Source of the DNA: Vitrella brassicaformis CCMP3155
Taxonomy: Eukaryota; Protista; Chromerida
Direction: 5' to 3'
Assembly: GCA_001179505.1 (NCBI GenBank)
Contig: CDMY01000104.1
Span: forward strand, 124,001-188,000
DNA: 64,000 nucleotides
Every line of letters begins with the position of its first letter. Positions within the stretch are counted from its first letter, which is position 1. Made by a program: the position numbers and the translations under genes. Shown here one piece after another: positions 487 through 52,266 of this stretch. Under the pieces are notes generated by a model, which was given only the letters and a program-made list of their open reading frames with translations, did no database searches and was not told the origin of the DNA.

Positions 487-497
487 CTAAGCTCGCA
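487..497. promoter_or_regulatory. Recurrent promoter-proximal motif (CTAAGCTCGCA)
   Basis: Lies about 140 bp upstream of the PiT start codon; the same word occurs at about 10 other gene starts in the window. Confidence 0.6.
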
Positions 498-1175
498 ATC
501 GCGAATCTCGACAGCGGGGGTTTCAGCGTCATTCTCTCATTCCTCTTGTGCCATCTTGCTCCGCATTATTCAAGTACAATCCTCGCCCCCAAAGGGAAGA
601 GATCGACATAAGCACACGTCGATCTCAGCCCGGGGCTACACGTACGTACACAAACATCCACACCAAAAAGACAGCCAGCCATATGCGCTGTATGCAGTGC
701 AGATCTGCACAGCGGATAAGCGAGACACATCGACAGATCCATCCATCCATCCATCCATCATACATACAAACAAACACGCACCTTTCAAAAAGCCCGCCCG
801 CAACTCAACTCACTGCCATGCACAACACGCGTACAACACATCATGAGTGCGGATCGGATCGGTCTTGCCGTCCATTGGCTACACAAGCGTGTCGGCTGTG
901 TGGCCAGCCAGCCATGGTATCCACCCCCTCACTGCCCACCCACGTGACGTGATGCAAGCCTAGCCAGCGTAGATAAATAGGTAGACTAGCAATAGGCAGA
1001 CTGCTCCCAACAGAAGACAATGAACACACACGCAAAAAGGACCTAGCTACCCTCGCGCGCTGCAGGAACAGACGCGCACGTCGGAAAATTCGCCGGCCCC
1101 GCACACGTGTGTGTGCGGCCACACAGCGTTGCAGCTACCCATCCATCCGGATGGGTGGCCCCAATTATTGCTCGA

Positions 1176-3989
1176 CTAGATGAGCCTGAGTGTCTCCATG
1201 ATGCGCTCGAAGCGCGGCACCATGGGCATAATGGCGGTGCCGATGGCCAGCTTGCGGTAATACGGGTAGGGGTCCAGCAGCAAATCGGGAGTCAACTTGT
1301 TGGGCCTGCACACAACACGACCACACACACAACCACCCCATATATATGTGGAAAATCCATGTGAGCGCATGTGTGTGTGTGTGTGTGTGGTGTCATTGAT
1401 GTCCGTCCCTTACGTGTGAGCCATTTCGACGGCGCCGAGCTTCAGCAGGATATCCCCGACGGGCCGCTTGCACTGCGGCTGCACCCGCACAAACTCTGTT
1501 TGATTACAGTGATCAAGAGACAGTGGCGAAGAGACAAACCAATGCATAAACACCTTCTTGAGCATTGTTTTCGTGTGTGTGTGTGTGTGGTCTTACCAGC
1601 CATGAGTTCCGCGCCTTGTGTGACGAGCGGTCCGGCGCCGTATCTGGGCTGTTGTGTGCCGAAGACGAAGTAGTTCTTCTTGCCGGGCACCACCGCCCCC
1701 TCGATGACGTTGGGCGTGCCCTGCTCGGTGTAGGTGAGGGTGGGCTCACACATGGGGAAGTTGTTGTGGTAACCTGAGAGACAGACAGAAGAGAGAGAGA
1801 GAGAGACATCATTCACACACATGGATGTCACTTACCGGTAGCACAGACGATCAGGTCGACAGTGATGGTCTGCCCATCCACGAAGGTCACTTCCTTCCCT
1901 GGCACACACACACACACAGAACACCCAAAACGCACCCATATTCACCCGGGCCACCCACCCACACAAACACACACGACCACACCCACCCACCCACCATCGA
2001 CAGACTGAATGCCCGGGTGCGGTTTGATCTTGCCGAGCTTCAAGTAGTGCAGGAAGCTCGAGTTGATGGTGGGGTGCAGCTCATAGATGTCGTGGTCGGG
2101 CACCGGCAGCCCATACAGCCGGTAGTCGCCCACACACACCCTCAACGCCCGCTTGACCATGAACTTGGTCAGCCAGTGGGGCCACCACGGCGGATTGTAC
2201 TCTATTACCGGCCTGCACACACAGAGAGAGGGAGAGGTGTGTGTGTGTTGGGGGCATTGTGTGGCGGGAGGTGTGTGTGGGTGTGGTGTGCTGACTTGCC
2301 GCCGACGACACGTGGCATGAACCAGTGGCCTCGGCGAAGCGACGCGTGTGCCTCTTCAGCCGCCTGGGCCGCATCGGCGTTGACGTCACACGCACTGTTG
2401 CCTGGACGCATACGCACAGGCATATAGAGACTCACACAGATTTCTGTATGTGTGTGTGTGTGTGTGTGTGTGTGCGTATGTACCTGCGCCGAGAACGAGG
2501 ACGCGCTTCCCTTTGAGCTGCTCGGGCGACTTGTAATCCTTCGAGTGGATCAACTCCCCGGTGAAGGTGCCTTCACACACAGAGGGGGTTTGGACAGAGA
2601 GAGAGTCTCCTTTGTGAATGAGGACCACCCGTGCACATGTCATGTCTCGTCTCACTTACCGTTGAGCTTGGGCCACCGTCTGTTCCTGTGGTGCCCCGTG
2701 CAGACGTACACCCCCTTGTAGGTGTGCTTCTGCGGCTCGCCGCCCTCCTTCTCGACCGTCACGGTGTACGAGTTGCCCTGCTCGTCGTCGGGGACGATCT
2801 TGCGCACTTGGGTGTTGAGCTGCACCTTCGGCAAGATGCCCCAGTGGGCCGCATAGCTCTTCAGGTAGGAGTGCATCTGCACACAGAAGGAGAGAGAGAA
2901 AGAGGGAGAGAGGGGGAGATGCATGTGTGNNNNNNNNNNNNNNNNNNNNNNNNNNNNNNNNNNNNNNNNNNNNNNNNNNNNNNNNNNNNNNNNNNNNNNN
3001 NNNNNNNNNNNNNNNNNNNNNNNNNNNNNNNNNNNNNNNNNNNNNNNNNNNNNNNNNNNNNNNNNNNNNNNNNNNNNNNNNNNNNNNNNNNNNNNNNNNN
3101 NNNNNNNNNNNNNNNNNNNNNNNNNNNNNNNNNNNNNNNNNNNNNNNNNNNNNNNNNNNNNNNNNNNNNNNNNNNNNNNNNNNNNNNNNNNNNNNNNNNN
3201 NNNNNNNNNNNNNNNNNNNNNNNNNNNNNGGGGCTGTGACGTGCCTGTTGTTTGGAGGGGAATTCGGGGTAGTGTGCCGGCATCGGGAAGTCCTTGTACT
3301 CTGTGGTGACGCGGCTGCTGATGATGTGCACATTGTCATATACCTGACGCGCACACACGCACACACCATCCTTACACACGTGTGTGTGTGTGTCATCATT
3401 GCGTTGCGGTACTGACCCCGTTCAGCCAGTTGCCACCGATGTCCTCATTCCCGTCCACTATGTCGAAAGGAATCCCGCGCCGCACCAACGCGGCCGCACA
3501 CCCGAGCCCACCCAAACCTGCACACACCACACACCACACACAGAGATCACCACAGACACCACAAATGGCGACATCCCTGCCCTGTGTGTGAGAGAGGTAC
3601 CTGCTCCAACGACGAGTATCTTGTCCTCCGTTTTCTCGACGCCGGCGGCCTTCTGCATCGCCGCCTTGTCTACACATGGCAGATCCACCAACAGACGCTC
3701 CGGGTGCAGCCACTGGCAGAACACATACCTGCCACACACAACAAAACAGACAGCAACCGCAGATCTGATCTGATCATCTCGCTGTCTGTCTTCATGCCGT
3801 CTTCTGGCAGTACCATGCGACTCCCAGCACGAGGGCCAATGCCGTCACGGCCAGGAGGGCGACGTGCAGCAAAGATGACGAGAGGATGGAGGTCAGGAGA
3901 GGCACTGCGGCAAGCATGACGGGAGTTATCCAGCGGAGGATGCAGCCAAGGCAAGCTCCGAACGCAGCTCCGAGGCAACACAGGCCCAT
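1176..3989 (-). CDS. FMO: Flavin-containing monooxygenase (class B FMO) with an N-terminal hydrophobic anchor; about 12 exons
   Basis: Spliced motifs: KILVVGAGLGG (FAD binding), DIGGNW, FTGELIHSKDY (FMO fingerprint FxGxxxHxxxY), VLVLGAGNSACD (NADPH binding) and CATGY. Exon 1 (MGLCC...VLGVAW) joins YVFCQW in phase 2. One N gap lies inside an intron. Confidence 0.9.
2930..3229. other. Assembly gap (300 N)
   Basis: Run of N. Confidence 1.
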
Positions 3990-4004
3990 CTAAACGGTCT
4001 CGGA

Positions 4005-4030
4005 TTAGCTCGCAGATGGCTTGCGAGCTT
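4005..4030. promoter_or_regulatory. Inverted pair of motif half-sites (TTAGCTCGCA 4005-4014 and TGCGAGCTT 4022-4030)
   Basis: Lies in the 199-bp interval between the divergent start codons at 3989(-) and 4189(+). Confidence 0.6.
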
Positions 4031-51519: not shown

Positions 51520-51554
<35 letters not shown>

Positions 51555-52205
51555 TGCCGCTTCTCTCCCTGGCTGACACACTCAGTCACTCACTTGTGGT
51601 ACAGCGCGATGGTGACCCGCCCCTCGGCCTGCTGGCGGCTCTTCATGTTGTAGATGGGAAAGTTTCTGACCACGGCCACCAGCATCGGCAGCACGTGCTC
51701 CCTGGCCTCTGCGATCAGCAGCACATACATGGCCGGGTGCGGCCCCTGCGTGGCTATCAGCGCCTTGATCTGGTCCGGCCGGCACGCGCAGTTGTGCCGA
51801 CTGGCCACACGACTGACCGCCATGAGGACCATCTTGGGTTTGTTGGGCCGCCAGTAGACGGCCGCTGACCCGCCACTGGTGCTGTTGCTGGGCGAGAGCT
51901 GCGAAGCGTACTGGCCCAGCTCGGCTGCGCAATCGAGCCCGTCCGCACCGAAAAAGTCGGTGTTGTCGATGAAGGTCCCGATGGCCTCCCTGAAGCCGCA
52001 GATGCACAGCAGCGTGTCTTTGTTGCATTCCGATGAGGAGAAGGGCGTCACAAGCAGCATCGTGCTGCTGTTGCTGTTGCTGTTGCTGCTTGCGTGGTTG
52101 GCCTTGAGCTTGTCAAACAGCTTTCTGCGATGCTTGTTGGCTGACTGGGCTGCCGCCGAGCCTTCACTGTCGTCCGCCGCGGCCTTCCTTTTGCCGTCCA
52201 TCCAT
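49311..52205 (-). CDS. NPEPL1: M17 leucyl aminopeptidase family protein, NPEPL1/PepB-like
   Basis: [95 protein letters not shown] and ATGYGVALL. Confidence 0.92.
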
Positions 52206-52234
52206 GCGAATGGTGTTCCTCTCTCTCCCACAAA

Positions 52235-52266
52235 GCTAAGCTCGCAGATCTGGTGCGGAACCGCTC
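52235..52266. promoter_or_regulatory. GCTAAGCTCGCA (52235-52246) plus AACCGCTC (52259-52266, reverse complement of GAGCGGTT)
   Basis: Lies in the 122-bp gap between 52205(-) and 52328(+). Confidence 0.65.

Follow-up and report, generated by a model that had tools for sequence, protein, structure and literature searches.

A short, partly palindromic word in 5' intergenic spacers of Vitrella brassicaformis: a candidate promoter element common to head-to-head genes

A word of 10 to 12 letters, with the usual form GCTWAGCTCGCA and the core TWAGCTCGCA, recurs between the genes of a 64-kb stretch of the Vitrella brassicaformis CCMP3155 genome (CDMY01000104.1:124001-188000; hereafter, the window), and in some cases it is completed to the palindrome TGCGAGCTWAGCTCGCA. 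It is an element of promoter regions: it is enriched, exclusive to 5' spacers, and the dominant shared word of the spacers between head-to-head genes. With a probability of roughly 0.7, we take it to be a candidate promoter element acting at the DNA level near transcription starts and common to both genes of head-to-head pairs. This reading is drawn from the enrichment of the word, its placement in 5' spacers only, its absence from genes, the nearness of mRNA 5' ends, the lack of flank homology, and its replication on other contigs.

The enrichment was determined by counting matches in the window. The 12-mer GCTWAGCTCGCA at up to one mismatch gave 11 matches against 0.22 expected, a number reached in none of 100 dinucleotide-preserving shuffles, and the exact 8-mer AGCTCGCA gave 9 against 2.73 expected. 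Matches with at most one mismatch to the 12-mer were called strong sites. Copies with exactly two mismatches were not enriched, three being seen (at 953, at 49170, and an overlap at 15938) against about six expected, so the copies at 953 and 49170 are backed by their location alone, as are the lone 7-mer at 57029 and the 22309 copy with its 1-nt insertion; these four places were classed as weak. Thirteen oriented sites were combined into a matrix, which placed the information in the asymmetric 10-mer TWAGCTCGCA, with weaker GC upstream. The usual site is thus asymmetric around a symmetric inner AGCTWAGCT, and full palindromes make up 2 of the 9 strong loci (34222-34238 and 44499-44515), compared with about 0.5% expected per site. 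A direct check of the window sequence found the letters given in the preliminary description of this DNA at every coordinate that it listed.

We then compared the placement of the sites with the NCBI gene calls, which cover positions 1-47453 and alternate strictly in strand across 1176-47453, giving eight successive head-to-head pairs. The 5' intergenic DNA amounts to 4,891 nucleotides (nt), or 10.3% of the annotated 47.4 kb, and holds all eight site clusters (P ~1e-8). The 6.6 kb of convergent spacers in the same annotated part contained no motif site, and the 35.6 kb of genic DNA contained no matrix match at 10 bits or more. The earlier claim of a 5' intergenic placement was therefore upheld for every match with at most one mismatch, none of which fell in annotated genes or convergent 3' spacers. 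The same word also came out of a screen of seven divergent spacers that did not presuppose the motif and listed the 8-mers common to most of them: the eight best shared 8-mers were all sub-words of the motif, found in three to six of the spacers and zero to two times elsewhere.

The comparison was extended to 45 kb of DNA from two other Vitrella contigs, L012 (CDMY01000360) and L013 (CDMY01000494), reached via two paralogues. Here the 5' spacers, 12.8% of the DNA, held all three matches with at most one mismatch (P 0.002), all four matrix matches (P 0.0003), and five of the six AGCTYGCA 8-mers. No motif was found in L067 (46% GC), the best Logan/JGI match to the WS/DGAT gene of the window, and a search for a Chromera orthologue with WS/DGAT among representatives returned only the Vitrella paralogue, gregarine-like and Cryptosporidium proteins, and Logan/JGI proteins.

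To relate the motif to transcripts, spliced contigs of a JGI transcriptome (sample 3300017148) and of Logan RNA-run assemblies were mapped to the window, and four RNA runs were additionally mapped onto 40000-45999. The contig 5' ends of five genes fell inside the motif or 14 to 33 nt away, on both sides of it (Table 1), and the proposed position of the word at gene starts was thus borne out at a scale of ~15-35 nt. The divergent starts are at most 20 nt apart at the 10552 site and at most 45 nt apart at the 40252 site, with the motif lying between them or overlapping one. For Rdx, the ends follow from the lengths on either side of the 40090/40179 joint, and the depth table is in agreement with them. 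Three coding sequence (CDS) starts, 15969, 34194, and 52201, lie 25 to 34 nt from the motif.

Several points weigh against the promoter reading. Contig ends, coming from assembled and not from capped reads, only bound the 5' extent of an mRNA, so that starts are known to about 20 nt, and the 5' ends of the Rdx and adh_short genes were obtained by arithmetic on mapped contigs. The mRNA ends lie at no constant distance from the motif, being found anywhere from inside it to ~30-50 nt away. Nor is the element universal: the Ank gene (CDS 36121, mRNA contig start 36110) has no site within 1.8 kb, and on L012 and L013 only 4 or 5 of the 10 promoter regions carry one. The claim that the word marks nearly every gene start consequently stands for the window, where the spacers of about 16 of the 22 gene starts hold a strong site, and fails on the two other contigs; the element is common rather than universal, and the window is richer in it than the average.

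If the word is a promoter element, it would be bound by a putative sequence-specific protein, which may dimerize over a strong half-site and a relaxed one. This protein would keep the spacer free of nucleosomes and recruit or position the RNA polymerase II machinery, in one direction or in both. A stronger version, in which one element of 10 to 17 bp would be the main core promoter and replace TATA box and initiator, a single putative binding event launching two opposite mRNAs ~20-45 bp apart (or from starts inside the element), seems to us doubtful.

The alternative that survives best, unlikely as we judge it, is a true directional initiator, in which transcription would start inside the word (TGCG, then A+1 GCTWAGC, toward the GCT side) and a palindrome would represent two overlapping initiators, one per gene. 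The longest contig of the 294-amino-acid (aa) gene indeed begins at 10556, inside the motif, but a second assembly of the same gene starts at 10580, outside it, and the Rdx contigs end 14 to 23 nt outside it. The CDS starts on the GCT side that lie just 25 to 34 nt away (15969, 34194, 52201) would suit an initiator, whereas WS/DGAT, RWD/IBR, and PAP-fibrillin, on the CGCA side of their asymmetric sites, also start within 16 to 33 nt, with no initiator facing them. All three tandem promoters with a strong site (486, L012:12434, and L013:15605) have their gene on the GCT side, a count that is not significant. That full palindromes are so common, at 2 of 9 loci against ~0.5% per site, also speaks for an initiator; taken with the symmetric core, this frequency would be fitted equally well by two overlapping directional sites and, plausibly, by a dimer with a strong half-site and a relaxed one.

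Less probable again is a chromatin or architecture site that would sit at promoters without driving initiation. Candidates would be the target of a boundary or insulator protein, a stretch that excludes nucleosomes, or the mark of a replication origin. The exactly central position of the motif in head-to-head spacers, in either orientation, would agree with such a role, but the mRNA 5' ends at the 15-35 nt scale and the presence of the motif in tandem 5' spacers, never in convergent ones, fit a promoter role more simply.

A role at the RNA level, as a 5' untranslated region (UTR) sequence or hairpin governing translation or stability, appears very improbable, because typical sites do not fold and most mRNA contigs start outside the word. 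In its favor, 8 nt of the motif stand at the extreme 5' end of one mRNA contig, and both full palindromes fold well (z -4.3 and -3.4). They were, however, the only sites to fold better than shuffles, the asymmetric sites, which are the majority, folding no better; spliced contigs of four other genes, as well as the second assembly of the 294-aa gene, start outside the motif; and the motif occurs in both orientations relative to genes. A hairpin as the typical form of the site was rejected for the same lack of folding. The promoter of a structured RNA, tRNA, or small nuclear RNA gene was rejected as well, since scans of the window found no Rfam family and no tRNA and the asymmetric sites fold no better than shuffles.

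That the word is the end of a dispersed miniature inverted-repeat transposable element (MITE) or short interspersed nuclear element (SINE), or an artefact of chance or composition, can practically be dismissed: a short palindromic word at many places might suggest it, but an all-against-all blastn of the 150-nt flanks, the check set for this case in the preliminary description, found no homology past the 12 to 25 nt of the motif itself, dinucleotide shuffles gave 0.22 matches against the 11 seen, and the 53 matches to the 17-nt palindrome in a metagenome collection are about the chance number estimated from the collection size, none of these loci having further copies of the motif and none coming from the Vitrella transcriptome.

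The sites, with the mRNA contig ends that lie near them, are collected in Table 1. For the part of the window beyond the NCBI calls (47.5-64 kb), genes were predicted with a codon-usage model trained on the mapped mRNAs and with Pfam, giving an M17 aminopeptidase gene (minus strand, to ~52201), an MRS2-like gene (plus strand, from ~52930), a WD40 gene (minus strand, up to ~56500), and a kinase-like gene (plus strand, from ~57100).

Table 1. Copies of the motif in the window and 5' ends of mRNA contigs near them (+ and -, strand;., full palindrome)
Feature	Position	Strand	Form	Context
Site	486-497	+	TCTAAGCTCGCA	Tandem 5' spacer upstream of PHO4 gene (-, CDS start 347); gene on GCT side
Weak copy	953-964	-	GCTAGGCTTGCA, 2 mismatches	Same tandem spacer as site 486
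Inverted pair	4003-4014; 4022-4033	+; -	Two facing copies; exact 8-mer at 4022-4029	271-nt spacer of FMO-like gene (-, start 3917) and 458-aa gene (+, start 4189)
Site	10552-10563	-	Exact 12-mer	Spacer of WS/DGAT gene (-, start 10377) and 294-aa gene (+, start 10768)
Site	15933-15944	-	GCTAAGCTCGCG	81-nt spacer (15888-15968, shortest CDS-to-CDS spacer cited) of RWD/IBR gene (-, start 15887) and 364-aa gene (+, start 15969)
Tandem pair	18997-19021	+	8-mer 19001-19008, 12-mer 19010-19021	Between 107-aa gene (-, start 18937) and 443-aa gene (+, start 19144)
Weak copy	22309-22321	+	GCTTAGTCTCGCA, degenerate, 1-nt insertion	Divergent spacer 22032-22504; no statistical support by itself
Palindrome	34222-34238	.	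7-bp arms	28 nt from CDS start 34194 of 1426-aa gene (-)
Site	40252-40263	+	GCTAAGCTTGCA	166-nt spacer 40207-40372 of Rdx gene (-, start 40206) and PAP-fibrillin gene (+, start 40373)
Palindrome	44499-44515	.	Perfect, 17 nt, 8-bp arms; 27 nt (44494-44520) with one mismatched pair	Between 354-aa gene (-) and adh_short gene (+, start 44613)
Weak copy	49170-49181	+	2 mismatches	Between two predicted minus-strand coding blocks; tandem 5' spacer or intron
Site	52235-52246	+	Exact 12-mer	34 nt from first in-frame ATG (52201) of predicted M17 aminopeptidase gene (-); divergent partner, MRS2-like gene (+, start ~52930)
Weak, lone 7-mer	57029-57035	+	AGCTCGC	Predicted divergent spacer of WD40 gene (-) and kinase-like gene (+); not significant alone
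mRNA 5' end, WS/DGAT	10536	-		16 nt past CGCA end of site 10552-10563; 5'-UTR intron next
mRNA 5' end, 294-aa gene, assembly 1 (longest contig)	10556	+		Inside motif
mRNA 5' end, 294-aa gene, assembly 2	10580	+		17 nt past GCT end
mRNA 5' end, RWD/IBR	15904	-		29 nt past site at 15933
mRNA 5' ends, PAP-fibrillin (three runs)	40283, 40289, 40296	+		20-33 nt past 40263
mRNA 5' ends, Rdx	~40238, ~40229	-		14-23 nt from other end of site 40252-40263

Other sequences were observed beside some of these sites. An exact 16-mer, GAGCGGTTTTAYGGAA, is shared by two neighboring divergent promoters 3 kb apart, at 15909-15924 and 18986-19001 on the plus strand; in both it abuts the motif and lies between it and the minus-strand gene, and it could be the site of a second factor or the trace of a small promoter duplication. 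Fourteen nucleotides downstream of the 52235 site there is a near half-site, CGCTCGCA, within the small inverted repeat GTGCGGAACCGCTCGCAC (52252-52269, plus strand). In the region upstream of the Ank gene (35750-36125), TGCATGCA occurs at 35754, and TTGCATGAGTG is repeated twice around 35990-36012.

Two further observations concern the 354-aa gene. The RNA contigs show 44055-44173 to be removed as a minus-strand intron that includes the annotated CDS start 44062, so the NCBI start of this gene is probably wrong and its 5' exon probably lies nearer the palindrome at 44499-44515. Inside the gene, at 43434-43461 and 43895-43918, contigs of each of the four runs show many loose ends and irregular joints, a pile-up that suggests a dispersed repeat.

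A 485-aa open reading frame (ORF) on the plus strand, 34260-35717, was dropped as a gene, as the codon model showed no coding signal and it is not annotated; it takes up the long interval that separates the Ank gene from the 1426-aa gene and probably arose by chance in GC-rich DNA. Neither a 484-aa ORF at 4307 nor nine other ATG ORFs had an exact match among recorded proteins, because the genes are spliced, and a homolog search with the ORF 57579-58346 gave no matches. An exon ORF of the window led to the V. brassicaformis CCMP3155 protein CEL92754.1. The assembly gap nearest to any motif site is at least 770 nt away. The gap at 8211-8510 falls within a WS/DGAT intron (GT-AG, 8141-8520) whose flanking exons are joined by three mRNA contigs, and those at 2930-3229, 30606-30905, and 31956-32255 lie within gene spans and adjoin G-rich runs.

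Almost nothing is known of nuclear gene activation in chromerids, the photosynthetic sisters of the malaria and Toxoplasma parasites, and a dominant start-proximal word offers a starting point for identifying its putative binding factor, either by pull-down or through a screen of ApiAP2 domains. On this subject the Vitrella genome paper (PMC4501334) goes no further than a median spacing of 92 bp, more head-to-head pairs than expected, and a large number of ApiAP2 genes, and it can now be asked whether this head-to-head packing depends on one shared element. If, under the stronger version given above, Chromera or the colpodellids had the element too, it would reveal the promoter grammar that preceded the AP2-driven promoters of apicomplexans. 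The motif could also improve the annotation of gene starts, several NCBI starts looking wrong or sitting 25 to 34 nt from it, and it could aid the design of compact bidirectional promoters for transfecting chromerid algae.

Full-text literature searches with the motif words and with Vitrella or Chromera combined with promoter, motif, or transcription start site returned no description of the motif, and the 8-mer and 10-mer strings returned primers only; the motif is thus apparently undescribed, as had been supposed. Its identity with TGCATGCA, WGAGACG, or GCTAGC was rejected because the consensus is not the same, and the distinction drawn earlier from the apicomplexan TGCATGCA and (A/T)GAGACG therefore stands. 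In the window, TGCATGCA had 7 matches against 3.9 expected, which is not an enrichment, and none at motif sites.

Among known systems, the NRF1 site GCGCATGCGC and the Drosophila DRE/DREF site TATCGATA form a class of palindromic activator sites. To the same class belongs the BANP motif TCTCGCGAGA, found in animal CpG-island and bidirectional promoters (PMC10206803, PMC9363121). Like the Vitrella motif, sites of this type are short palindromic or half-palindromic words within tens of nucleotides of the starts of many unrelated genes, occur in either orientation, and are common between head-to-head genes. The Vitrella sequence differs from them and is mostly asymmetric, consisting of one full half-site plus the inner AGCT, and it lies in much shorter spacers, where no more than 20 to 45 nt separate the divergent starts. 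Among protists, the INR-FPR of Phytophthora is a dominant core-promoter element. In Trichomonas vaginalis, genes carry an initiator bound by IBP39 as well as M3 and M5 motifs (PMC7946386). In these protists, as presumably in Vitrella, a single lineage-specific word instead of a TATA box is found at the starts of a large share of the protein-coding genes. The Trichomonas initiator, however, fixes the start at one base and is directional, whereas in Vitrella the start position is not fixed, at ~20-nt resolution, and the word occurs in both orientations. The third comparison is with the words bound by ApiAP2 proteins in apicomplexans, namely, TGCATGCA (AP2-EXP/SP), GCTAGC (TgAP2XI-5), and TAGCTA (AP2-O) (PMC6631176), which come from a related lineage and are likewise short, palindromic, and intergenic. 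None of them is identical to the Vitrella motif, whose center, GCTWAGC, equals the TgAP2XI-5 word with one extra base. Since chromerids encode many ApiAP2 proteins (PMC4501334), a member of this family is a reasonable candidate for the protein that would bind the element.

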